From Ruditapes philippinarum (lineage: Eukaryota), in the NCBI RefSeq assembly GCF_026571515.1, contig NW_026852001.1, positions 62,001-126,000 on the forward strand: DNA of 64,000 bases, given 5' to 3'. A program made the translations under genes and the position numbers. Numbering within the stretch: position 1 is the first letter of the stretch; each line of letters opens with the position of its first letter. This document shows, one piece after another, positions 376 through 61,488 of this stretch. The notes beneath the pieces are model-generated. The model had not been told where the DNA came from. It ran no database searches and was given only the letters and a program-made list of their open reading frames with translations.

Positions 376-3300
376 TTTTGTATCCGACATATCGGGACAT
401 ACAAGGAGGTTCTTCATTTTCTGCATTTGTCCATTGGCATGCATCTTGCTCCATCCAAAAGAAATCTTTTCGAAAATAAAACATACAGATATAATTAATG
501 CACTAATATAAACCGCGTCACGACAAAACCAACGTTCACCATGGAACCAGACCAGCCTGCGCATTCGCGCAGTCTGTTTAGGATCCATGCTGTTCGCTTA
601 CCAACCCTATTACAAGTAGAGAATCTGATAGCAAACAGCATGGATCCTGATCAGACTGTGCGGATGCGCAGGCTGGTCTGGATCCATTCTGGTCGCAAAC
701 CCATTATGTTGGTTTTGTCATGACGTGGCTCATATTGTTTGAAAACGGAACTACAAAAACTACACCAGCAACAAATTTAAAAGCGACAGTAAATATCTAA
801 CACGAAAGTACCATTTCACAATGACTATAATCTTTCAAATAAAAAATACAATAGAACTGGAAGTAAGCAAAAGGTAAAAAGAGTAACTGAACATTTTTTA
901 CAATTTTTAAGTTTAAAAAAAGGTTATACATGGGTACTCAACAAATGTTTAGTTGTCGTCTTAGTGTCGTTGACATCTTAAATTCAGATAACAACTATTT
1001 TATTTACTACAGGCTATAGACCTAGCTTTATCGGAGGTTATAACAAAACCCAGAAGTATATTATGAAATTCGTGGAATTGTAAAAATAGAACACATTAGC
1101 AATACTTTGACACAACCTTGGTAGACTTAACATGTTTAAACATTATAGTTGTATTATGTATATCATAACGTGAATGGAATGCATTTTCATTGAATTCAAC
1201 GTTCAAGTCAATAACGCATGTATTAATCTATTGATTTACATACATGTTTCGGTAACCAGATAGTTTTGACGCTACTATAATAGGTATATAAATAAACAAG
1301 ACATTCAGAAATGAATTCATGAATATTTAAGTAATGCAATTCCTAGAAATAACAAAACCAGGGGGTACAAGCTTTTATAAATGATCCTCATCAAAACTTT
1401 GTTATTTAGATTACTAGATCAAAGAACCCTTTGATACCCTCTTATTTCATTAAACGATATGTGTTTGTGCGGTTAAAGATATAAAAAAGACATAGTGGCG
1501 GATATAATTGTAAGCATTACATTTCCTTATTTGTGAAGGAAACGTGTCAAATATAGGAACCAAGTGGCATAAAGAAAACAGTAATAAATGCATTGTATGT
1601 TAATTTGATGTACGAATGTCATTAGTCATATTATCTTAACTATCGTTATTATATTTAGAATTATTTTAAACATGTGTGTCCAACTTTGAATTTAAGAAAG
1701 GTACATTAAACTACTATAAAAATACAAAAACTAGTAGTGATGTACGGTAAAACATGCCAATAAAGCAATGGATGACGTGTTTATTTCCTTACTTCTAAAA
1801 TTTGCAATAGCAGGCCGATTTTCTCTTTATCCTCTCCTTTCCGGATACTTTCAAAGGCGCAAGTCCACTCATTATCATACAGTTCAGATAGCTCTTCAGC
1901 TAGTTTTGTTGGTCTCTTGACATCATTTAGATTTGCTATGTTCGGATTTCCATCCGTAAGTCTATCCGACATAATCTTGCTTAATCTTGAAAGAGTTAAA
2001 TATAAGATAGAGATACAGAAGATTTAAACGTTATATGTACAATGTATATGTCATATTTGTGTGCTTCGATACCAAACGATTCGTGTTACAAAATGCATGA
2101 TAACTATTCACCTTTTAAATAAATGTTACCAGAAAAAACAACACTTTCAATATGGTAGATCAAAAGAAATTTTTGGATGGATTTAAAGTGATCCAAGTGT
2201 AAAATAAGCAGAAGCATGCATAATGAATAGGTACAAAATGCGCATTACTTAATATTAGAAACAACAATCTGTCAAGCTACATAACAAACTATTCACATTA
2301 CCAAAATTATATATTCTGTTGACTAAGGAAATAAACTGATTCAGCCTAGATTGATTCAACTTAACACACATATGAATTTACAAATGTAATAGCATATTTA
2401 ACTTTTACCTTTGAAGAGCATCTTCCTTTTCTCTTTTCTCTTCATTGTACATGTCTGTGAGTACTTCAACTTTATGTATGGCGCTTTCTTTCTTTCTTCT
2501 TTCCTCTTCATAAAAGTCCTTAAACTTCTGTACTTCATCCTCGTTTCCATTTCCATGGCCGCCGCCAAGAATTGATGTGTAACCATTGGGTCGTCTGAAA
2601 GGAAATCTATGAGTTTCTGTATTAATGTATACTGAACGGAAATTTAGAAAATAGAACATAATGCAACGATTGCATGTATATTGGTTGTGAGACGTTATAT
2701 ATCTGCAAGTGTCAGGCAAACATAAAATAAGCAAAATGTATTAAACTAACCCATAGCCGTATGAATTATAAATTGCATTGGCTTTTATTAAATAAATCAT
2801 AACTGTTGTTATTGAATTGATGATGATGATGATGATGATTGTAATATACATGTATATCAAAACGAATTTTATTAAGACAAATGTCTTTTCTGCAGTTTTG
2901 TATAGAAATGATTATGAAAATAACTCTTATACATATTATCACACACCCGTGCCGATTTTGCGACTCCGTAAATATGGTATTGCACGGCCGTGCATATATT
3001 TTGACGTGACGTCATTAGCGTTATACAAACATAGTGTAAAGACGCGCTAAATGTTAGCGTTATACTATAGGCGCGTCAATGAAAAATGACTCTTATTTCA
3101 CTTTAAATGGTCTTTATTTTTGGTATGTGATAAATAGAATATTAAATTCGTGTAAGTTCATTACTGAATTTATTGCACTCGTTGAATAAAATAATATTAT
3201 GCTCGCCAGAGGCTCGCATAATATAATTTTATTCAACTCGTGCAATAAATTCAGTATTGAACTTACACTCATTCAATATCCTCTATTTATTACAAACGTC

Positions 3301-3942
3301 TTAAATAAACAGTCTCCAAACAAGAAAGGCAGTTACAAAAAGAGCAATTTAATAGTTTATAGTATAATATCTTACCTTCTCAATTTACAAATACAGAAAA
3401 TGAGCACTCCGCATAACAAAATAACTAGTACACATAATATTCCTATTGCAATGTAAAAGCCATCCGGAGAACACTGATCTGGTAAAAGAGAAACGATCAA
3501 TATGTAGTTAATGATTTACAAAATATATTTCTAATACATAAATACAGAGATAATTTATGCTTTTAAATAAACCTAAATGTAAAGCATTTCGTTCAACAAA
3601 TACAAAAGGGACAAATCAAATGAGAATAAAAAATGTTCCTGGTGTGTACAGACTACTTTCCGACTAGTTAAATACTATAAAAATGAGACTCTTATGGTAT
3701 ATATTAAGAATGACAGATATTCCCACTAATCTAATTGACTTTGACAACTGTACTTAATTTCCTTGTACAAAAATGTATACTGTATGCACAAATAATCGTT
3801 TTTTTAGAAGTAAACATGTAGATAGTTCATAACAAGTTAACATTAAAACTTTAAATATTTAAAAGATTTTAAATAAAATATTCATGTATCATGGCATGTA
3901 TTAATAAATTTATCAAAACAAAATGTAAAGCTTACCAGCCAT
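376..3942 (-). CDS. Mieap/SPATA18-like (mitochondria-eating protein family) paralogue 1 with N-terminal transmembrane helix; 3' end lies outside the window
   Basis: Exons: 3942-3936 (aaaATGGCTG|gtaag), 3478-3376, 2594-2409, 1985-1793, 465-376; all GT-AG and phase-consistent. Protein: MADQCSPDGFYIAIGILCVLVILLCGVLIFCICKLRRRPNG... then charged coiled-coil (FYEEERRKKESAIHKVEVL), then RLSKIMSDRLTDGNPNIANLNDVKRPTKLAEELSELYDNEWTCAFE, which aligns by eye with the core exon of the genes at 20097 and 26383. The family call is transferred from those paralogues. Confidence 0.8.
506..735. mobile_element. Foldback MITE (non-autonomous DNA element)
   Basis: Terminal inverted repeats ccgcgtcacgacaaaaccaac / gttggttttgtcatgacgtgg, and internal inverted arms ccagaccagcctgcgcat / atgcgcaggctggtctgg and ggatccatgctgtt / aacagcatggatcc. 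Confidence 0.8.
2818..2838. repeat. (TGA)n microsatellite
   Basis: tgatgatgatgatgatgatga; accounts for the poly-Met ORF at 2817. Confidence 0.85.
3131..3288. mobile_element. Long hairpin/foldback element (element probably extends left to ~2927)
   Basis: Arm gtgtaagttcattactgaatttattgcac...gttgaataaaat pairs with attttattcaac...gtgcaataaattcagtattgaacttacac; the outer ends are taaatag / ctattta. Confidence 0.7.
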
Positions 3943-4465
3943 TTTCGTTTTAACCGAAATTGTCGTATTTTACTTCCTGGTTTTGATCGACCACGTATTA
4001 CGTTGTCATGCTCATTCAGCCGTATAGCATAAAGGCATGTAAAATGTATAGTGTTTAAATCGGTGCATTTTCGAGAAGGGAAAAAAGGAAAATAAAATCC
4101 AAACAGATAGTCCACATTAACGTTTGATGCATCAAAGTCATATACATGTACATGTCGGTCGGTCTTTAATGAAACAACAATTCAAATATACGACAAAGAT
4201 GTTTTTCACTTCTACTGAAAATATAACACAACGACTCTCGTTAGAATGAATGTTCATTCGAAATTTCATTATTCAAGATTGTATGTTTATAGCTTGTATA
4301 GATGATAGTGTAAAAGTGATCTCTATAACAATTCTATTTTTAGTTTATACTTACTAAGGGGTAATAAAAAGTTACAGTCAAACGAAATAAATAATAAACC
4401 ACTTTAATTTAGAGTGAAATATATGTCTAAATTAAGCGATTTATTTAGTTAAGATTTTTTAAAGA

Positions 4466-17163
<12,698 letters not shown>

Positions 17164-18819
17164 CTTGATACTTTGTTTGTAATGTGGGCTATCTCAAGAT
17201 GTTATGATTATTTTCAAATATTATCGTTATATCTGTGTGCATACTGGATCTGAAATAGATAGTAAGATTAACGGGTGTATATAGGTGGATTTAGGCGAAC
17301 AGGTCTACGTATCAATTAAATAAGCTTCAACTAAACTGTAGTAATGATTCGTTGTCATTGTAACTACATTGTATGCTTAAATATACATATCACATTCCGG
17401 CTATATCAAGGCACGATCATAATATTTTGGTTATATAGTTTTAAGTTGTCATAAAAGTTTCAAAATTGATCATTTTCACTATAAGTGTTAACGTATGTAA
17501 TGGCCGTGGACAAAATTCATATTTTCGTTTGATGTTTGTGCATTAAATGCCTGTAAGATCAATTTTTCTTCAGTTTTTCTCATTCAGACACGTTTATAAA
17601 AACAGTGCCTTTTGATAAACAAGAATGCGATACTTTATTCATTCTTTTAAAGGCCCTTTTTCTACAAAAGTTTTTTGAAACCAACATGTACAAAAAAGGT
17701 TGTAAATATGATTTTAAATCTAAAAGTTAAATCGATTGCATGATACAAGATTTTTACAGAAGAGATACATTTTCGATAAAGAACATTAGTATAAATTACA
17801 TCATAAGTGTATCACTAATATTTTTAAAAATGTTTTATTGATATTGAACTTAATGTTAATTAATGTTTGCCTTTGCCTACGTAGTAATCCAAATATTACG
17901 TTTTTATCTTTCTTGCAGACGATAATGCGTATTCAATTTTCAGAAAAAGTAAATATATATATTTTTTTTTAAATTGATAACAGTCAATTTCCCCTTCTAT
18001 ATCAGTACTTAACAAATATTGCTGATGTGTAGGAGAACGTTAAATACTTCCTTGAAACTATAAATTGTGTGTACGAGGCCTGATATCGAAAGTATACGGG
18101 AACAGCCGATGTTTTACGATTGGTCTGATACATGTTGCAGAACAAATCAGAATGATTGATAAATCATTTAATAAATACTTCCTGTATAAAGCAAAGACAA
18201 TTGATTGAATATTGAAATATATCATTTTAGACCTTACATGAAATAATTATACTTCTAAGTATTTTTATGTTAGATAAATAGTCTACATTTTTTATGTTTA
18301 AAGGTGACCACTTTTCCCCCATTTTATAGGTATAGCATTTGATTCATAAACATTCATGGTACTTCCCTTTACGTCACGACTGTAAATATAGATAACTTGC
18401 TTGTAGATATCATCTTATAAACTAGGTTATAACTTAAAGTAAAAAATTGGTTTCTTCATTATTCGTTCAGGTAGAAAATCTATAATATACACTTGAATTT
18501 AAATAGTTTAAAGTTGTTCGTAGTAACAAGTGTAATTTACATCCGCGTTGTTAAATAGGAATAAATATTTATCAGTTTACTTAAAGGTAAGTTTATATAC
18601 TATATTTCTTTTATTTTTTTGTACATATTGAATTCCTATTTGCATTTAGCATCGATTGGTGACTAATTCCTAACTTCGCTTCTTGAAAATGAAAGTAGAA
18701 ACATATATGGACTGACCTAGGAATGGTAAAACTGAAAAGGTAGTATGACTTTTTTTGATATCACTCTTTCTTTTTGCAGGATGTACACCAAATACAATAC
18801 GACCTTTTAGTAACGTGCT

Positions 18820-21800
18820 ATGGGAAATTCGAGTAGTTCTAAGCGAAGAAAATGCAGTCCGGGATCCCCACAACATAACAAAGATTCGACACAAACAACT
18901 AAAAGAAACAATTGGGTCGAAGACAGAAGCCCTCATCACAGCTTTAGCGGCTCGGTAAGAAATATCTTTGATTTCTGAGTTAATGCATTGTTATGCATTA
19001 TCTGCGTTATCATAAATTTCATAGATAAATCTGATTTGTATAAATTGTTTCAGAGAGAGGTAAATAGAAGTCTTCAACAGCATATTTGTAACGAGAATGA
19101 CTTAGAAAAGAGGTAAATATTATCTATGTTTAAACCCTTATTATTTCCTTTACATAAAACAAATAATCTTTCAACGCTGAGCAAGTATTTTCGTGGGATT
19201 TAATCACTACTATTAGACTAAAGGTTTGATTTGTTTGTTTGAAAGAATCACATATGAATACTGATTATTTCTAATATCCTGTTGTTTTTTCTAGCTATAT
19301 TTCTCTAATACAACGTGTATTGTTAAAGACTGAGATAGATTTATATATCTTTTATTTAGTTATAAAACTTAAGTACACTTCATGTATATGTTTGTTTTCA
19401 ATTTCTAGTTATCACAATGAAAAGGTTGGTAACATAAGTATGTTATATAAGGATGACATTCGGAAAAAAAATGAATCTCAAGAAACCAAAAATCTTCACA
19501 CTGAAAATAAGATGTTGACGTGAGTATAAATATCAAATAATTGAGTTAAAACGTTAATAAATAGATTTACGTGTTAGCACGTGTAGGGCAACTAATAACC
19601 ACTTTATATGTCAAGCATCATGCAAATATTATGTGTTCCGTTTCTCTTGTTATGTATGCCTCATTTCAAACAACATTATATATGACTAAAAAATCAAAAC
19701 CGATATTACTTATTGTAATAATATATATTTGTTAAGGTTGGACAATGACAACCTGAAAAGTGAAAGAAGAGAGCTGATATCAAAACTGGAAGGTCACAAA
19801 GAAGAACTTATGCAACATAAAAAGGAAATTGATGATCTTAAAACAAGGTATTAAACACGGCTTATTCAACATGTATGTGTTTGCTAAATGGTTAAAGGGA
19901 AATAACTTCTATATTTTTAGTAGACCTATGTAAAACACATCGATTTCATTGCGCACTTTAAAATATTTATGCTTTACACTTTGTTTCCTCTCACTAAGGG
20001 TCTCACTTAGATAATTCTAAATTGTTTGATAAACCTTACTAACGACTGTACTTGTATGTGCTAAAATGATGTTCCTACGTTTTTATTTACCTCCAGACTT
20101 AGTAAATTGGCTTCTGATAGGCTTACTGACAATAATCCGAATATCACTGATCTTAGCGACGATAATAGAGCCATCAAGGTGGGAGAGAAGTTTATTGAAT
20201 TGTACAACAATGAGTGGAGTGATGCATTTGAGGAACTGACTGAAGTTTCCAAAATGGAGGAGGTTGAAGCAATTAAATACCTTTTTGATACAATTAAAGT
20301 AAGTTAATAAATGTTTAATACAACATGGTAATAAAAACATGAAGTTTGTTACATTAGTTATATAAAGAATAAGTTTCAAATTGAAATAATAAATCAAAAT
20401 TCATACACATGAACTAGAATAATTAGATTAAAAACCAACATAATATTAAATAATTAAATAGACATGTTTCGCTTTATTAGCTTCATCAGTTGATACATGT
20501 ACATTACAAAGGAAAATATGTAGTTTTATGTAATTTTTGCATATTTTACCAGGTTATATGTAATGTTTGTGAAATTTAAGCGGCTGAATCGGGAACTTTC
20601 TCTGTTTATAAGAAAATCTGTATAATGTATTATAACATTTTCTTAACTTTCAAACAAATCAGCATGCTTCTTCAAAATCAAATTACAATCATTTTCAATT
20701 CAAGAATGAAAATTTAGATGTTTAACTTATAACAGCAAGATGAATAGTTCAGTCATAAGATAATGTAATCTTATAACTAGAGTACACCAAATAATAAATT
20801 GAAACAACACATGACATGACTACGTTGACTTAACATAATATTGTCAGGAGTACACAAACCTTCAAGCTGTTTCAAGCTTACCATCTTCTTTTAAAAACAG
20901 TCAGCAAACTAAAATTGTATTTGTTTATGGTTTGTCAGATAATTTCTTATATAGATAATTTGATTTGTAATCCGAACATAATTGCTGATTTCCAGAAGAT
21001 ATTTGACAAATGCAAGGAAACAGCAGAAGGACATTCTAACAAACTGGAAGAAGCTATTCTTGAGTTCACCGGTAACGAAGAGGTAATAGAAACGAGTCAA
21101 AAACAAACCAGAATTTCTTTTTCTCATTATATATTACAAATTGTTCTTATAATCAAATTAATGTCTGTTATAGCTTGTTAATTGATCATTTATTTTCTCA
21201 AATCCAAACTTTTTCATATTAAAAAGGATAATATTTATATAAAAGTATACAGTGTAACTTCTTAAAACGGAACACCTGTGGGAGTAGCCAAAAAGTTTGG
21301 AATTTTCCAGAATTCAGAATTTTCTGAACAAGTAGGAACATTAAAGATCATGTTTAATTAAGATATGATGAAAAATAAAATGTATATAAATAATATTATT
21401 TTACAATTTATAAATAATGTGTCAGTTCAAGCAATCAAAGAAAGACAAGCTTACTTCACAGTATATGCTCGTTCATATTTATTAAGGAAACATAGCAACC
21501 AAAAAGAAATCACTTTGGTGAGAATATGTCCACATAGAAATTGGTTTGTTTTACATATGCATAAGCAAATCTTAATTTTTTTGAAGACAACTTCTAGAAT
21601 TATTTTAGTATTTAAATATTAAAATTGAGAAACCAGCCGTAGGAGTCTGACGGTGCATGCTTTACACTTTTCCAGTATAGGGCACACGTATTCTTTTATT
21701 TGAGGACCATACACCGTTTTCCATGTACGGCACAGACGTGTGTCATAGGTTGTTTTCTAAATTTAAAATCTCACCATTACCGTGTTAAAAGGTTGAATTA

Positions 21801-22828
21801 TGCTTAATTGCTTGATTGGGGGCGTGGACTGTAGCTTGCACTTTTCAGTACCGTCCATGAACTTCGAGCCTGTAACGTTTTGGACTTTCTCTAGGGTTTC
21901 GTTTTTCTTTATTTTATTCTGGTAACATTTTTAATTGTTGACGCAACTAAAACCTCAAAGACTAAGGTTTTAAGATTTATCATCTCATATGTAACAAAAA
22001 TATTTTTTTCTTTACCAATGTCCGAATTACGTAATATTCAAATGTTAGTCGTCAATGTAGACTTTGCATTATTTGTTCAGATTCACCCGATGCTGGCCAT
22101 GTCCCTGAAAGTGTACAAAGATGAACGAAAAAGAATGTTTAGAAATACAGTTCCAAGTACTAAAACGGTTTGTTTATATTCTCCTTATGTAACTTTCTTA
22201 AAAAAAAAAACAGAAACATTTTCTTTGTCTATATTATTTGATGGTCAAATTCAATATAGTACAATTACATACAATTAAAACGATATCATTTTCAACATAC
22301 CGTTCTGCTAAATAATTAAGAATATAAGATATGAATGGAGAATATATCTTTCTGTTTTAGATAATTCAAGCAATTGCTCCTTCGAAAGAAAGAATATTGG
22401 GAAAATTGAATATATATGTGGAAGCAGCTACAATAATTTGCTGGTTAATGTGTATTCAGGACCCTCCAATGGTTCTTTATACAACCAAGAAAGGAAAAAA
22501 GTTCGACGGAAAGTTTTTCAGTGCATACACTGAACGCGGTAAACGCGTAGCGTTCCCTGTTTGGCCTGCGTTGCTCCTTTGCAATGATGGACCAGTCGTT
22601 CAGAAAGGTATAGCACAAGGAAAAAATAAGAAGAAAAGGAATTTGGCGAGCATAAGTCCTTCTGCAACGAACAATAACGAAAAGGCACATACATTGGAGC
22701 TAGAAAACAATACTTTGACAACTTTAAATACTGATTATCAGGAGTCAGGCACAGATACTCTCATAAGAGTTTTATCTAAAGATATTCAGGAATTAGACAT
22801 AAATACACTCACAAGAGTTGTACCTTAG
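18820..22828 (+). CDS. Mieap/SPATA18-like paralogue 2, N-myristoylation-type N-terminus; about 419 aa
   Basis: Exons: 18820-18954 (MGNSSSSKRRKCSPG...), 19054-19112, 19409-19519, 19737-19847, 20097-20298, 20996-21082, 22081-22167, 22361-22828; 1260 nt in frame. Coiled coil, then RLSKLASDRLTDNNPNITDLSDDNRAIKVGEKFIELYNNEWSDAFE, then C-terminal ICWLMCIQDPPM...FD...VWPALLL...GPVVQKGIA, which I recognise as the MIEAP C-terminal domain pattern. A probable non-coding first exon ends near 18586 (aag|gtaagt). Confidence 0.85.
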
Positions 22829-24773
22829 ATTTTCCTGGGAACAACAGTACAGTAAACTGAAGAAGCACAATCATAACATTCATCTTTATATTAACAGAAT
22901 GCATTCATATTATGATTTTGGAATGCGTTGTACTAATCAAATATTACAATTTGATTTTCACTTTCCTAAAATGGAACAATTGACATGCCTTGCTTAAAAA
23001 ATTAAATTCGGAACTGTAGATTTAATGACAGTTCAGTGACAGTATAAAATAACAAGTTACTGTACAGTGATTTGTCAGACTCCATGAGTTTGAAAACTGT
23101 CCTTGCGTAAAACTTAACATGCATTTATATTTATTATTACTTGATAGTAGAATGTTTGTCGTGATCAAGGTAAATGTTATGTGAATATCAACTGTTTGAC
23201 ATCCTTGAAATACGTAGATTATATAAGCAAACATATATTTTGCTAGTAAAAGGAGAAATAAAAAGTCAATTTAAACAGGTTATTTGAATATACATGTAAA
23301 ACATATCCTATTATATTAACAGACCTGATCAAACTCTGCGAATCTCTTCTAGTATTGATTTCATTTCCATCGAGGGATCTTTCCTTTTTTATTTTTTTTA
23401 TTTTGTTTTAATTACATTATCAGATAAAGTTATTTGAAAATAATGCATCCCTCAACACAATGTTAAAGAAAATTGAGAACGTTTTGAGAAAAATTACTTG
23501 ATATATGCCTCTTATAATCAAACTCAAATCACAAAACTTGTGCATATATTCTACTTATGGTAGACCCGATCTTTATCGAGATTTATTTATATTTATGATT
23601 GATTTGAATATAGTTGTATTTATGATTGATTTGAATAAGAAGTGTTAATAAAAACTAGTATTCTGTTCAAAAGATTTTGTCTCAGATAAAACATACCCCT
23701 TAAATGCTTTTTATTATAAAGTAACGAATTTAGTCATCGTGGGTAATACTCTTTTCATCTTACGTTGTGGTTATAAGGTTCTCCGTTTTATTATATTTTT
23801 CTGTTCCTCCGGGATCATTGATGGCAAAACATTTAGTGTCGGGGGATTGAATACTGCATTAATCCGCTATTAGCAGGAAAGATGTAATACTAGTACCTTA
23901 CATTTATCACTCACGAAAGCTCTCGATCACATCGCGTCTACAATTTTTATCTTTTTAGTTTTGCTTTCATTGCTCTTGACAAATTTTACAGGTTCAATTA
24001 CACCTTTACTCTTCTCTAGAAACTACACATTATCAATGATAACATATATATATATTCTATACCTAAAGGCATTTAAGAAAAACACGATTTCGAAAAGTGA
24101 ATCTTAGATAAATGTTAGCATTTTGTTGAATGAAGTTTGGGTATATCGTATATAAAATTTGTAACTTTGGCATGTACAAAACAGATTACTTTTCACATTT
24201 GTTTATCCACAGTTTTCTTTCAGATGATTTCTTATTTGTTTAGATATTTGAATAAAACCTTAAATTACAGTTGTATGGCCAATTCTTTGAAGCAAGGAGG
24301 TTAAACGGTTTATAGACGTTTTATTTATATTTACCGCTTGCTCGATTGTAAACCATGTGTTTTGCCAAAACAATAAGTGTATTGTTAAATCTATAAATGG
24401 TTTTACAGGTATATTGGACTTTAAGCAATATCGATTCAATATAAATCCCATTTAAATTCAAATGACTTGGCTTGAATGTCGTTCAAAACTCTGACAATAA
24501 ATTAACTTCCTGGTCTGAAACCATACAACTACAAATCGTAAAGACATAACACATATTAATAGTTATCAAGACAAGTTAACAGTAGGATTAAACGTGAACT
24601 AGATAGATTGAAAAAAATATCTTTACTTATCTGTTTAATATAAGTGACTTAATAAAAATAATATCGTTAGGTAATACAATTATACGACGAGATATGTATT
24701 AAACAGTGTAAACAGAAATAGTAAGAAAGATCGGTGATAATATTGGAAGATTATTTAAAAGTATTGTACAAAA

Positions 24774-27700
24774 ATGGGAGTAGTTGCATCATGTAAACCG
24801 TCTAATAAAGCTGTTAAAGACAATGAAACGAGGCCTATTGATGACCAGCAACCAAGACCATGTATATCTGGTATGAAACATGGTATTCCTACAGGCGCGG
24901 GAACATCAAATATTAAACAGCATGTTCATTTTCGTGAAGACGACGATAACAACGAATATGACCGATTGTGGGTAAGTGGTAAATAAGACATTTTGTCATA
25001 TATTTATCATGTCTATTCACGAAATCAAGATTTTATCATGATTTGTGTCGTTTCCTAGTTCGCAATTTATTTTTTAATGGTATCGAGTATTTCGTAGTAG
25101 ATTTTATACTTTATGCACTTTTTTCAGCCTCATCAACAGAGACAAGGATTTCTACCACCTATTGACGATGAGCAATCACACAATCAGTACGTTCATTTTG
25201 AAAATACGATCTTGCACAAACTTTTGCCTTATGTTTGGTTGAATATTGCGGATTTTATCAGAGTATAGAATTAAACACACGTATCATGGTTTGGTAAGTT
25301 TTTGTGGAACGTTTTGTTTTTAATGATTAAGTATAGATGCCTTAAAACAACAAGGAAGAGGCTTGATTTTTACCAATGGCCAGGAGAAAAACCTTTTCAA
25401 GTTATAGAGTAGAAAAATTAATTAAATTTTATCCTAAATAATCCATTTAATCATTATATATTGCACTCACAGACAGACCAGCAAACGTAACCCAAAGAAA
25501 CGTAAACCAAATGAACAGAAACTCCGTATAAAAGAACTAGAAGAAGAGATCAGTTCACTACGGTTAGTACAATACAACACTTTGGACTTTACAGTACCGT
25601 TTCTGAACAGGCTCAATCAAACCGAGCATGAAACATATTCAATGTAGTCGTTTAGGGGTTCTTTAGGGCTTTTTTAATTTCCCTATTTTGTCAGTTTCGT
25701 TCTCATATAGGTTTGATGTCATCTATATCGATACATTTATGATCTTTAAGTATTTTTCTTTACTTTCATGTATACATGCATTTCCTAACAGTGTTTATGT
25801 ATCTTTAACTATTTAAATATATGTAATATTTATAATAAACTTCGGTTTAAGTTAATTGCATATTTCTCGATACATTGATTTAAACTCGTATATAAATAGA
25901 ATATTGATTTACCTTCCAACATGTGTATTTTCCATTTGTAGTAAATCGAGTTTTTTAACTGAGTCTTAGAGGTTGGCACCTCAAATTTGACATGCCGTGA
26001 ATTAAAATTTCTTCAACTTGATTTTTACAAAGGTCTGAAATCACAGGACTGAAAATGCAACACTTTGATGAAATGCAAACTCTTAAACAAGAGGCAGATG
26101 ACTTAAAACTGAGGTAAATATGGCAACTAGAGGTTCACTATCTGGATTGCAAAATAGTAAAAATAAGGTGAAAAATGTTTACCATTTATGATTTCCTGTA
26201 ACCAAATTAAAAAAAATACACAAACAGAAAAATATCAGTTCTGTATCACATACTTATTACTTTTAAAAATATGTATTTTACATGAAAATTTAGTTTAGTA
26301 AGGTGCTGAATTAAAATGTCAGAAACACCAGCAGAATAGCTTCGTCATTTTGTTGAATACCATGCATTAATGGTCACTTCAGATTGAGCAAGGTGGCGTC
26401 TGACAGACTGACAGACAATAACCCAAATATAACAGACCTTAGTGATGAAAATAGAGCTATCAAAGTAGGAGAAAAGTTGTCCGAGCTGTACAGCAATGAG
26501 TGGAGTGATGCTTACGAGGAACTAACTGAAGGTGGTCGTAGAAGTGATATAGAAGCTATAAACGTTCTACTTGAGATACTGAAGGTAATTGTGGTACATA
26601 CATTTTAATTTCTCTGCCTTTTTTGTTATATACATTTGACATAAATACAAACAATACAGAAAAGTTCTCTTGACAGTTGAAACATATAGTCAAAAGAGGG
26701 TTTTAAACAAAGCATCTAACATCTGTTCGAAACTTTTATATTTCATCATTACATTTTTATAGTCAGACGAGATAACTGATTCTTAACACTGTGCTCAAGC
26801 GATTACATGGAGTGTGAGAGGTGATGCACTTTACAAAATCTCTCATGAAAATACTATTCACATCATGTCAGATTATCTTTCACCGTATTATATGTCGTGA
26901 ACTTACAGTATGCCTACTTATTTTTAATTATTGGATTTCAGATCATATTTGGAGAATGCAAAAGAAAAGCTGAAGAAGAAATACGTGATATTGGAACGAA
27001 AATATTAGCATGTACTGGACATTCGGAGGTAACTTTTTATGAGCTATTAAAAGAAACATATTCTAAAGTGTAAGTTTTTCGGAAGAGGTTGTAAATTTTA
27101 TGTTTATGATGAAATTGCCACAGACAGAATGACAATACAACACGAATGTATATGTTCATATGCTCAGTTCTTCTAACAAATAAATATTTTAAAAAACATA
27201 TGCAATCACTAGTAATTTCATTTTCCAACTTGAATTTCATCTCTAGTATTCATTTCTGTTTATTACACGAGAATAATTTTCTTTCTCTCTTGTAATATTG
27301 ATAATAAATTGTCCTTTGTTTTGTTTTTATTGCAAAAAACAACATTTTTAACGGTATATATACGATTAAACACTCTTGTATTATTATTATTATTCTTATA
27401 ATTATTATGTTTTTGAAGTTCATATTTATTTCAGTTGAACAAAGAGTTAACTGCGGCAATGAAGCTATTGAGAACAGAACGTAAAAGAAATTTCAAAGCA
27501 ACAATGCCTTATCTTTTGACGGTAGTGTAAACAATCATTCATTTAAAAGTTAACATTTTTTAATTTCTTTTTGAAACTCAAATTTGAAATACCCAGTCAT
27601 ATTTACGTTTCATACCTTTTGAATATACAGCGAGGTTTAAAATTATAATATCTATCAAATTTTATGTGGCGTCGACATACTGTCTGTAAACCACAAAGCC

Positions 27701-28382
27701 GTTAATTCTCGGCCAACAGTATGTTTCTTTAAACGTTTTCGGAACTGGTTTGTCCAGGAAGTGGACTCATTTAATGATAATTAAATGCTTCAAAAACGTG
27801 CTGCATTAACTTTAAATTTTATTTAATATGTCATGAAACTGATCAACTTTTAACGATATTTATTTTCAGACTTTGGAAATATTTGTACCTAAAGAGGAGG
27901 AAACAGTCAAATTGCGAAATTATGTTCGAATCACAACAGAAACATGCTGGTTAATGTGTATACACGAACCACCTTTAACATTTAAATATTGTGAAGACAA
28001 TAATAAATTCGATGAGAACTATTTTAGCCCATACACAAGAACAGGTGACACTGTAGAGTTCCTTGTTTGGCCCGCTTTACTTCTCCACGATGGTGGACCG
28101 CTTTTGAACAAAGGTGTAGCACAAGCAAATGACTCAAAACAAAAAGAACAGAAAGTACAGACAAAACATACAAATGATAATGATAATACTGACTACATTG
28201 TTAATGATTCTAATTCCTCCAACGAAACTGAATTGTCTAGAAGAGAAGAAGCTGATGTAACGAGAATTAACGAAGATTTTGTGTCAAAAATAGACACAAT
28301 TAAACCAGTACCAAAGGCAAGACGAACAAAGGAACATTCTTCTAAAACACACAATGAAAATACAAGAGAAGAATCTTCTTGA
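24774..28382 (+). CDS. Mieap/SPATA18-like paralogue 3, myristoylation/palmitoylation-type N-terminus; about 438 aa
   Basis: Exons: 24774-24971 (aaaATGG; MGVVASCKPS...), 25128-25186, 25473-25562, 26033-26113, 26383-26584, 26942-27028, 27435-27521, 27870-28382; 1317 nt in frame. Exon sizes 59, 202, 87 and 87 nt and the intron phases match paralogue 2. C-terminal TCWLMCIHEPPL...FD...YT..G..V...VWPALLLHDGGPLLNKGVAQ. Confidence 0.87.
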
Positions 28383-28604
28383 ATTACATATCTTCACAAA
28401 GCTTTTTCTTAAACAGGAATTGACTTACATTGAAACTATTTATGGATTAAAATAATAAAAAAAAATCTGTTACAATGACGGCATGCAGAACGAAATATTA
28501 AAAACACAAATGTACATATTTTAACAACCGCCAGTATTTTATATTGTATGTGATATGTGATGGTTGGTGAACTTGATGTACAGAAAGGAAGTTAACATTA
28601 ACGC

Positions 28605-60903: not shown

Positions 60904-61391
60904 AAAAGCCGGGAAAAAAAAGTTCAGTAATTTTTGTACAGTATTAACAGGTGTCCATGATTTCTGTAAAGAAAACTGTCGCAAATTAAAGATATTTCAA
61001 AACGCAACCAATAATATGTTCATCACACATTTATATATTAAAGTTTTCTATTCTTATACCAACATGTCATTCTTGAAGTAAATATAATTATATATACCAA
61101 GTTACAACAATATTAGCTTACTTAAAGCAGTAAATAATTTACCTAGAACTCATTAATTAGTAAATGTAGAATCCCCACAAGGCCTGTGTTAAGCCCTAAG
61201 AGCAAGGTTTAAAGTGAGGAAAGATGAATGAAGAGTTAAGATGATGATACCTGAGGTGACATCACTTCAACATTTATCAGTGTCTGTCAATCAACACCTT
61301 ATTCTATATCAATTATTCAGACAAAGGTCAACATAGCGTTGTCTTATCTCCCCACACTAATTACTGTAACCTGAGATAAACACTGCAGCTT

Positions 61392-61488
61392 AACATTGTT
61401 TCTTTAATGCTTTTAAAAGTATGGTGTACAGTATAGGTCAACATTAATGTTTCTTTAATGCTTTTAAAAGTATGGTGTACAGTATAGG
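61392..61488. repeat. Short tandem duplication (~50 bp x2)
   Basis: tgtttctttaatgcttttaaaagtatggtgtacagtatagg occurs twice. Confidence 0.85.

Follow-up and report, generated by a model that had tools for sequence, protein, structure and literature searches.

Predicted membrane anchors at the amino termini of three neighbouring Mieap-family genes in the clam Ruditapes philippinarum

The analysed stretch of Ruditapes philippinarum DNA (64,000 nucleotides, here called the window) carries three neighbouring genes with a MIEAP domain (Pfam PF16026), referred to below as paralogues 1 to 3. Each contains a conserved core exon, located at 1793-1985 on the minus strand in paralogue 1 (193 nt, RLSKIMSDRLTDGNPNI...ELYDNEW) and at 20097-20298 and 26383-26584 on the plus strand in paralogues 2 and 3 (202 nt each). 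The copies were found by tblastn with E values of 1e-14 to 1e-30, and 28 of the 67 columns in their alignment are invariant. Entry in phase 2 and exit in phase 0 are the same in all three, which confirms the common core exon in equal phase that had been claimed in the original prediction. The claim of an adjacent exon of 87-90 nt also stood, as such an exon follows the core in every gene (376-465, 90 nt; 20996-21082, 87 nt; 26942-27028, 87 nt), and the starts of the paralogues are indeed joined to the core only by splicing.

With a Pfam gathering cut-off of 27 bits for MIEAP, the full RefSeq protein of paralogue 1 scores 53.3 bits (residues 123-314 against profile positions 1-193 of 195), and the last exons of paralogues 1, 2 and 3 score 33.6, 38.3 and 46.1 bits, the first of these lying outside the window. 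The family assignment, originally made without a profile search, is therefore upheld for all three genes, which are real members of the bivalve-expanded Mieap family. This expansion is already known (Regan et al. 2021, PMC8382680): orthogroup OG24, the same gene family as the window genes, comprises 807 genes, about 53 per bivalve compared with 0.6 in other animals. Our searches gave at least 149 MIEAP exon matches in the R. philippinarum genome, with many arrays genome-wide, and 1146 MIEAP cluster representatives at 50% identity. Contigs C6225, C6085 and C9848 score higher against the Pfam MIEAP profile than the window genes and are more likely to hold the canonical orthologue.

Paralogue 1 is RefSeq LOC132746021 on the minus strand. 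Its protein begins MADQCSPDGFY-IAIGILCVLVILLCGVLIFCI-CKLRRR, put together from a first coding exon of only 7 nt at 3936-3942 (ATGGCTG, that is Met-Ala plus one nucleotide, followed by gtaagc) and a transmembrane-anchor exon of 103 nt at 3376-3478 (DQCSPDGFY-IAIGILCVLVILLCGVLIFCI-CKLRR). RefSeq entries XP_060591060 and XP_060591053 and RNA-derived Logan proteins have the same MADQCSPDGFY start and bear out the predicted hydrophobic helix followed by CICKLRRR. Further downstream are a coiled-coil exon of 186 nt at 2409-2594 (phase 2 to 2), extended by RFPF in isoform X1, whose acceptor lies 12 nt further upstream, then the core exon, and then the 90-nt exon at 376-465 (ISFGWSK...LLVCPDMSDTK; sequence and RefSeq), the last one within the window. 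The gene had been thought to end there, which is not the case: two further exons lie 6-843 bp to the left of the window, one of 96 nt at -6 to -101 and one at -556 to -843 that encodes the C-terminal part of the MIEAP domain and the stop.

The AF2 model of this protein (pLDDT 89.6) has helices at residues 8-36 and 55-109, the latter a single long one (pLDDT >95) in keeping with the coiled-coil exon, and then a compact domain at residues 124-317, a helical bundle with a beta sheet (pLDDT >90). The IAIGILCVLVILLCGVLIFCI segment has a Kyte-Doolittle mean of 3.35 over 19 residues; the flank before it (MADQCSPDGFY) is acidic and the C-terminal side is basic (CKLRRR). Signal-anchors combine a single stretch of 19 or more hydrophobic residues, close to the N-terminus, with basic residues on its C-terminal side, and paralogue 1, which has this layout, would by the positive-inside rule be inserted N-out and C-in, with stalk and MIEAP domain on the cytosolic side. 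Signal-anchors of the mitochondrial outer membrane, too, typically consist of a short N-terminal stretch and one helix with basic residues behind it, and paralogue 1, with KLRRR directly after its hydrophobic helix, fits this layout. Its helix could then be of the Tom20/Tom70 type, stationing the subfamily on mitochondria rather than on the ER or plasma membrane, a reading that the mitochondrial link in the Mieap family name would favour as well. However, outer-membrane anchors are moderately hydrophobic, and higher hydrophobicity redirects proteins to the ER. The very high hydrophobicity of the paralogue 1 helix speaks against an outer-membrane anchor, which we consider unlikely.

Between paralogues 1 and 2 lies a minus-strand gene outside the Mieap family at 4466-16100, with Pfam matches to three SRCR domains and a ZP-C domain; its end is marked, near 4441-4468, by a stop and an AATAAA signal. 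The assembly gaps at 5787-5934, 6048-6177 and 8477-8606 all fall inside this gene and none in the three Mieap genes. A role in immunity or membrane remodelling had been proposed for the Mieap genes. Its sole basis was adjacency to the SRCR-ZP gene, and the family occurs in many arrays of the genome, which weakens the proposal.

Paralogue 3 is confirmed at the level of RNA. All seven of its introns are seen as GT..AG joints in spliced contigs from three public runs of three studies, and one contig of 1410 nt covers it from 24582 to 28261. The first exon (24582-24971) consists of a 5'UTR (24582-24773) and 198 coding nucleotides (24774-24971, MGVVASCKPSNK...). A contig of run X1 is contiguous from 24582, and the joint from 24971 to 25128 occurs in all three runs, confirming the first exon with its MGVVASCK start. 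The ATG has an A at -3 and a G at +4, with an in-frame stop 6 codons upstream (24756), and the only upstream ORF in the 5'UTR, itself contiguous in the RNA contig, is 2 codons long. Exon 2 (25128-25186, 59 nt; joint 25186 to 25473) is skipped in a minor, frame-breaking form in run X4 (joint 24971 to 25473, depth 3). It is followed in the spliced contigs by exon 3 (25473-25562, 90 nt) with the basic cluster KRNPKKRKP, exon 4 (26033-26113, 81 nt, coiled coil), the core exon and exon 6 (26942-27028), both also found by tblastn, exon 7 (27435-27521, 87 nt) and, through the joint from 27521 to 27870, the last exon (27870-28382), which encodes the C-terminal part of the MIEAP domain, a long polar tail and the stop.

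The model of paralogue 2 consists of eight exons with canonical splice sites and a single open frame of 419 codons. Exon 1 (18820-18954, 135 nt, phase 0, donor tcg/GTAAGA) encodes MGNSSSSKRRKCSPGS..., with Gly2, Ser6, polybasic residues 8-11 and Cys12, and occurs once in the genome. Exon 2 (19054-19112, 59 nt) has the length and phase of its counterpart in paralogue 3. Exons 3 (19409-19519, coiled-coil region) and 4 (19737-19847, coiled coil, with weak matches to coiled-coil families) are both of 111 nt and phase 2 to 2; exon 3 also holds an in-frame Met, a potential start if exon 1 were skipped. The core exon matches Pfam MIEAP positions 6-46 with 17 bits. Exon 6 (20996-21082) is supported by tblastn and splice sites, exon 7 (22081-22167, 87 nt, ...KDERKRMF...) has its homologues at 27435-27521 and, for paralogue 1, in an exon left of the window, and the last exon (22361-22828) encodes the C-terminal part of the MIEAP domain, an acidic or polar tail and the stop, with a 3'UTR extending to about 23468-23910. 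Contigs of runs X1, X2 and X4 and raw RNA reads of run X24 cover the last exon, and a 494-nt contig of run X4 agrees with the spliced lengths of exons 8-7-6-5.

The Met-Gly start of paralogue 2 is predicted from genomic sequence, namely from the splice sites and from a stop that lies in frame 3 codons before the ATG. The joint of exons 1 and 2 (18954 to 19054) is likewise drawn from the genome, and shortly before the ATG there are an acceptor-like site and, with uATGs at 18745 and 18781, two short upstream ORFs in frame. The transcript could instead lack the MGNSSSS exon and start at the internal Met of exon 3 or in another upstream exon. This is distinctly unlikely in our judgement. Its splice sites are of the canonical type, and the frame stays open over four exons; besides the upstream stop, the ATG has a good context (G at -3, G at +4); the architecture agrees with that of the RNA-confirmed paralogue 3; and RNA-like sequencing runs contain about a quarter of the words of the 9.7-kb region, which fits the exon content of both genes.

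We applied the PROSITE myristoylation pattern G-{EDRKHPFYW}-x(2)-[STAGCN]-{P} with Gly at position 2. Paralogue 2, which starts MGNSSSSKRRKC (MGNSSSSK, with Gly2, Ser6 and basic residues at 8-11), and paralogue 3 (MGVVASCK) both fit it, in line with the N-myristoyltransferase consensus originally noted, as a match to the motif only. For paralogue 3, a signal of Gly2, Ser6 and Cys7 had been proposed. Its alleles in runs X1 and X4 read MGAGASHK and also fit the pattern: Gly2 and Ser6 are kept, residues 3, 4 and 7 change, and Cys7 is replaced by His, so that the first two elements stand and the third is polymorphic. Together with the NLS-like cluster in exon 3, this leaves paralogue 3 without a firm second membrane signal. 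Myristoylation, palmitoylation and membrane targeting of the paralogues are predictions from consensus motifs.

To place these starts in the family, the N-termini of 197 full-length relatives were surveyed. Forty-three of them (22%) begin with Met-Gly, and glycine occupies position 2 more often than any other residue; Met-Gly starts are enriched across the family, taking a general background of about 5-9%. Thirty relatives fit the PROSITE pattern, which is unspecific once Met-Gly is given, 15 have a Cys in residues 3-8, and 9 are polybasic; examples of starts are MGNSKSKGGR, MGCLPSKKK, MGNQCCGNE and MGSRCCREN. An N-terminal transmembrane helix occurs in four distinct relatives, and about 75% of the family members have no anchor motif. 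This last proportion, the low specificity of the pattern, and the polymorphic Cys7 and NLS-like cluster of paralogue 3 would all suit proteins in which Met-Gly does not function as an anchor, the glycine being incidental or a glycine N-degron and the proteins soluble condensate scaffolds like vertebrate Mieap. We regard this as rather unlikely. The prevalence of glycine at position 2 argues against an incidental Met-Gly, as does the retention of Gly2 and Ser6 in divergent alleles of paralogue 3, and Met-Gly clades are shared by different bivalve orders, many of their starts having Cys or basic residues next to the Met-Gly, as is the case in acylated proteins with dual signals.

On a tree of MIEAP domains, the N-terminal types are clustered, with 15 changes, whereas shuffled labels gave 30.5 on average and never fewer than 26. 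All members of the transmembrane type fall into one clade, and the Met-Gly clades include Mya, Dreissena, Mercenaria and Ruditapes. Anchors are therefore mostly subfamily traits, passed down within ancient subfamilies and not exchanged freely. The original prediction had envisaged free swapping of 5' exons, which this clustering argues against. Paralogues 2 and 3 agree in their exon phases, and their exons 2 and 5-7 are equal in length too. The N-termini had also been called unrelated; for paralogues 2 and 3 this may not hold, since their gene architecture is alike and their N-terminal exons may be diverged homologues.

Together, our data suggest that the window contains three members of the bivalve Mieap expansion with predicted membrane anchors ahead of a common coiled-coil and MIEAP module, an explanation that we hold to be reasonably probable. 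Paralogues 1 and 3 are expressed, judging by RNA-derived proteins and spliced contigs. Each protein would begin with a short membrane-addressing element from its own 5' exon or exons, followed by a coiled-coil stalk assembled from symmetric phase 2-2 exons and by the MIEAP domain, modelled as a bundle of helices with a small beta sheet at its C-terminus. In paralogue 1 the element would be the signal-anchor, in paralogues 2 and 3 a putative N-myristoyltransferase site of Met-Gly with a small residue at position 6, to which paralogue 2 may add a polybasic patch of the Src or recoverin kind. By analogy with vertebrate Mieap, these anchors would keep a cytosolic, probably oligomeric MIEAP module at membrane surfaces, where it may interact with membrane lipids or partner proteins or arrange them. 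For the three paralogues, we infer the lipidation, the topology, the target membranes and the biochemical role.

Searches of solved structures with the MIEAP model returned no significant relative and no functional clue from the fold. GrpE is the only family that recurs across its helical and beta parts (Foldseek ranks 1-7, E 0.16-0.9), and VIA-align gives Z scores of 5.2-6.4 over 129-142 residues, the best being 6.4 (rmsd 3.8-5.3, 129-131 residues aligned), all under the tool's significance guidance of Z >=8. Like GrpE, the MIEAP model combines one long helix with a bundle of helices and a small beta sheet towards the C-terminus, but its helical part is larger and the sequences are dissimilar. 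On the strength of this recurrence, and as Hsp70 and Mieap are both expanded in bivalves (PMC8382680), MIEAP could be imagined as a GrpE-like module that serves the expanded Hsp70/HSPA12 chaperones of bivalves in nucleotide exchange or docking, with the anchors placing cofactors on specific membranes. We find this very improbable, given the sub-threshold scores, the lack of any sequence signal against solved chains, and the finding that at least 65 MIEAP contigs and at least 28 Hsp70 contigs in the scored genome lists have none in common. The fuller version, in which ancient transmembrane, myristoyl and palmitoyl address labels station a GrpE-like cofactor on different membranes, is a long shot; if it were true, two bivalve-expanded families would be parts of one system.

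Mieap is a single-copy and poorly understood gene in vertebrates, tied to mitochondrial quality control and cardiolipin metabolism; in bivalves it has undergone an expansion of about a hundred-fold. For this expansion, Regan et al. (2021, PMC8382680) give copy number and duplication history, without N-terminal anchors or domain architecture, and we found no description in the literature of N-terminal anchors of bivalve Mieap proteins. The predicted anchors (a transmembrane helix, or a myristoyl group alone or combined with palmitoyl or a basic patch) in sizeable conserved subfamilies are a first architectural clue, and suggest that at least part of the bivalve family probably acts at membrane surfaces and not within mitochondria. 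Being based on motif predictions, this is a modest advance; it includes curated gene models, RNA-supported for paralogues 1 and 3, for a clam locus so far annotated as "uncharacterized".

In vertebrate Mieap, the structured C-terminal half binds cardiolipin and related phospholipids and the N-terminal half drives condensates; mitochondrial condensate formation and phospholipid binding are known only for the mammalian protein (PMC10845071). The window proteins resemble it in having a C-terminal MIEAP domain after a hydrophilic, coiled-coil N-terminal half. In contrast to vertebrate Mieap, they are shorter (320-438 residues) and diverged (31-53 bits), come from a family with over 100 copies, and have a predicted N-terminal transmembrane or myristoylation signal, which the literature consulted does not report for the vertebrate protein. 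As the domain similarity amounts to only about 30-50 bits, function can be transferred from vertebrate Mieap to the window genes only weakly. The likeness to dual-signal N-myristoylated proteins of the Src-family kinase or recoverin type is one of motif, seen in the starts of paralogue 2 and its relatives; the cargo differs, being a kinase or calcium sensor in those proteins and a coiled coil with a MIEAP module in the proteins of the window.

Each putative exon was compared with the window by tblastn, and the conserved core exon appeared in three copies, at 1793-1985 (-), 20097-20298 (+) and 26383-26584 (+). Aligned with one another, these are invariant in 28 of 67 columns, SDRLTD, NPNI and ELY.NEW among them, and the DNA reading gives phase 2 on entry and phase 0 on exit in all three paralogues, which bears out the original prediction of three Mieap-like genes sharing this exon in one phase. 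Splice sites are GT..AG throughout the three gene models, and frames are open with one terminal stop each. The coiled-coil exons of the three paralogues, at 2409-2594 (-), 19409-19519, 19737-19847, 25473-25562 and 26033-26113 (+), measure 186, 111, 111, 90 and 81 nt. Every one is symmetric (phase 2-2) and of a length divisible by 3, and the stalk can therefore be lengthened or shortened by exon gain or loss with the frame intact. The three gaps in this part of the assembly (1.4 Gb, roughly 30% GC), at 5787-5934, 6048-6177 and 8477-8606, all lie within the minus-strand gene with three SRCR domains and a ZP-C domain (Pfam; about 4466-16100), and touch no Mieap-like exon or intron. The suggested link to immunity has adjacency to this neighbor as its sole basis; the neighbor terminates with a stop and a polyadenylation signal of its own and has no exon in common with paralogue 1.

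Membership in the MIEAP family (Pfam PF16026, cut-off 27 bits) holds for all three genes, as the last exons score 33.6, 38.3 and 46.1 bits for paralogues 1, 2 and 3, and the whole paralogue-1 protein, aligned to positions 1-193 of the 195-position profile, scores 53.3 bits. Queries throughout were either individual exons or proteins taken from databases. The RLSK..SDRLTD.NPNI motif lies just ahead of the Pfam boundary and holds several residues that are nearly invariant in the family; residues L118, R123 and W139 of P0151, the RefSeq paralogue-1 protein, are invariant in an alignment of 94 sequences. The AlphaFold2 model of P0151 based on this alignment (pLDDT 89.6) consists of a helix at 8-36 (the anchor), a long helix at 55-109, a helical bundle and a small six-stranded sheet, and the same domain is predicted for a domain-only relative (pLDDT 90.7). 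Searches with the full-length and domain-only models, by Foldseek against the PDB and by VIA-align widely, returned no significant structural relative (best Foldseek E = 0.16, best VIA-align Z = 6.9), and a profile search of solved-chain sequences gave coiled-coil noise only. Among solved families, GrpE alone comes up repeatedly over the full length of the MIEAP model, with Z of 5.2-6.4 and Foldseek ranks 1-7, all at scores below the guidance for significance. The 65 MIEAP and 28 Hsp70 contigs in the two scored genome lists have none in common, and thus no genome-wide linkage of the two is seen.

Paralogue 1 (-) has exons at 3942-3936, 3478-3376, 2594-2409, 1985-1793 and 465-376 inside the window, and at -6..-101 and -556..-843 to its left. 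On contig C488, of which the window takes up positions 62001-126000, the MIEAP C-terminal exon is at 61157-61444. Position 376, originally taken as the left limit, is thus a real exon edge but not the end of the gene, merely that of the last paralogue-1 exon within the window. A protein cluster look-up matched the protein to R. philippinarum LOC132746021, and RefSeq XP_060591060.1 (320 aa) equals our model, given an exon 6 of 96 nt; isoform X1 uses an acceptor lying 12 nt further upstream and so gains RFPF. MADQCSPDGFY is likewise the N-terminus of two Logan-derived proteins, whose contigs measure about 1.2 kb. Since they and the RefSeq protein share this beginning, the 7-nt first coding exon is real, and the transmembrane start does emerge by splicing, as had been proposed. 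The possibility that the transmembrane exon is instead a C-terminal anchor exon of the ZP gene was rejected: that gene terminates at a stop with AATAAA after it, the donor it might use has the wrong phase, and in both RefSeq and RNA-derived proteins the exon is part of the MIEAP gene product. Within the 1.3-kb intron of paralogue 1, at about 500-730, ORFs that read MDP(D/K)QTxRMRRLVW are present on both strands and resemble two inverted copies of an interspersed repeat.

Paralogue 3 (+) comprises 438 codons in exons read from the DNA at 24774-24971, 25128-25186, 25473-25562, 26033-26113, 26383-26584, 26942-27028, 27435-27521 and 27870-28382. Contigs placed on 22401-28400, from three public runs of three studies whose RNA origin is a guess, carry all seven of its seven introns as GT..AG joints at the predicted positions, and one contig of 1410 nt covers the gene from 24582 to 28261. 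Because the introns are skipped and the genome has no retrocopy (apart from this locus, exon 1 matches just one decayed copy, on contig C15250), these contigs are not genomic, and the spliced MGVVASCK start is confirmed. An in-frame stop precedes the ATG by 6 codons, and the start context has A at -3 and G at +4. The proposed Gly2/Ser6/Cys7 signal stands in part: alleles in runs X1 and X4 begin MGAGASHK, retaining Gly2 and Ser6 but lacking Cys7, and palmitoylation at Cys7 is therefore not fixed in paralogue 3. Exon 3 (25473-25562) encodes a basic cluster, KRNPKKRKP, which resembles a classical nuclear localization signal and sits oddly with a membrane-anchor reading. A minor splice form in X4 (depth 3) joins 24971 to 25473; it skips the 59-nt exon 2, which shifts the frame into an early stop.

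Paralogue 2 (+), with 419 codons, has exons read from the DNA at 18820-18954, 19054-19112, 19409-19519, 19737-19847, 20097-20298, 20996-21082, 22081-22167 and 22361-22828. Its last exon and 3'UTR have coverage in all four of four runs, and a 494-nt contig agrees with the spliced lengths of exons 8-7-6-5. The predicted start lies in a favorable context, 3 codons after an in-frame stop, splice sites are canonical, and exon phases are identical to those of paralogue 3, with equal lengths for exons 2 and 5-7; these genomic features and the matching architecture support the predicted MGNSSSS first exon. An ORF at 21365-21622 was excluded as an exon by phase and by homology with paralogue 3. The 3'UTR (22829-23910) appears to end at about 23468 in X1 and reaches about 23910 in X2, with a 14-nt deletion at 23627; the differing ends may reflect alternative polyadenylation or allelic indels. 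Among 169 matches of a word search for annotated proteins of paralogues 2 and 3, made with the database relative P0075, none is on the window's contig, and a core-exon profile search gave no close relative of the two within the best 150 cluster representatives. At the DNA level, the two loci show no similarity beyond coding sequence, and alignable stretches are limited to the core exon (78%) and the last exon (68%). The N-termini had been called unrelated, and the 5' exons of paralogues 2 and 3 indeed have no detectable DNA similarity, but the common architecture suggests that these exons are diverged homologues.

Predicted anchors of these kinds recur in the family, as shown by a census of 197 full-length relatives that have 60 residues or more ahead of the core. 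Glycine is the commonest second residue (43/197, 22%); among eukaryotic proteins in general, roughly 5-9% have Gly after Met. The PROSITE myristoylation pattern fits 30 of the 197, cysteine occurs within residues 3-8 in 15 (such as MGCLPSKKK, MGNQCCGNE and MGSRCCREN), 9 count as polybasic (such as MGNSKSKGGR), and an N-terminal transmembrane helix is present in four distinct proteins. The idea that 5' exons are freely swapped was not supported. On a maximum-likelihood tree of the MIEAP region from 136 non-redundant proteins, the N-terminal state changes 15 times, whereas 300 label shuffles gave 30.5 changes on average and never fewer than 26. Mis-annotated starts would raise the count of transitions. 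The transmembrane proteins, from Ruditapes and Mercenaria, form a single clade (SH-aLRT 84), and most Met-Gly proteins belong to one of two clades, where they make up 11 of 13 rows and 7 of 9 rows respectively, the second clade being of the Cys-rich type. This clustering makes the anchors conserved subfamily traits with some transitions. Exon-by-exon placement of paralogues 2 and 3 on the tree was discarded, since in the control the paralogue-1 core exon fell away from its own protein.

The decayed copy of the paralogue 2/3 region (G000:C15250:38001-46000) lies at about 1115-4249 and 639-827 of that stretch. Its paralogue-3-like exon 1 (84% DNA identity) encodes MGSKLGKPSNK, a stop interrupts its core exon at the third codon, exons 6-8 are absent from the 8-kb stretch, and C15250 also contains an inverted paralogue-2-like 87-nt exon with a stop. 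These features probably mark a pseudogene cluster, and with its core-exon stop and missing exons the copy was not accepted as evidence of selection on Gly2. A further protein, P0002 (854 aa), has three core-motif stretches and a MIEAP domain of 88.6 bits, and is annotated on a 5.1-Mb contig of Endozoicomonas sp. Mp262. Mieap orthologues are stated to be absent from bacteria (PMC10845071); host-to-symbiont gene transfer or contamination could account for this protein.

Together, the data show three genes, expressed or annotated, each of which combines an anchor motif with a stalk and a MIEAP domain. Paralogue 1 would be a signal-anchored protein with N-out, C-in topology, because its helix is very hydrophobic, with an acidic N-flank and KLRRR on the C-flank, and N-myristoylation would make paralogues 2 and 3 peripheral membrane proteins. 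The MIEAP module, on the cytosolic side, would work at the membrane surface. The genes are as originally observed, but their interpretation is supported only in part, as anchors are mostly inherited and Cys7 is variable. Our literature search turned up no description of N-terminal anchors in this family, and none of the papers listed among those that name the protein deals with invertebrate architecture.

The family itself is large. At least 149 MIEAP exon matches occur on about 65 contigs of this genome, many in arrays, and the core-exon profile matches 1146 cluster representatives at 50% identity, named ones coming from Mya, Dreissena, Mercenaria, Mactra, Mytilus, unionids and oysters. Pfam scores are higher for loci on C6225, C6085 and C9848 than for the window's three genes, and those loci are better candidates for the canonical Mieap orthologue. 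In mammalian Mieap, the hydrophobic C-terminal half binds cardiolipin and the N-terminal half forms condensates (PMC10845071); because of these properties, the most economical reading is that the proteins described here may be scaffolds that bind lipids or partners and have been redirected to other membranes. An expansion of Mieap in bivalves has been reported, with 807 genes, or 53 per bivalve versus 0.6 elsewhere (Regan et al., 2021, PMC8382680), and the family is over-expressed in mussel gills (PMC5549309). The three paralogues are a variant, with predicted membrane anchors, of this known and published gene-family expansion.
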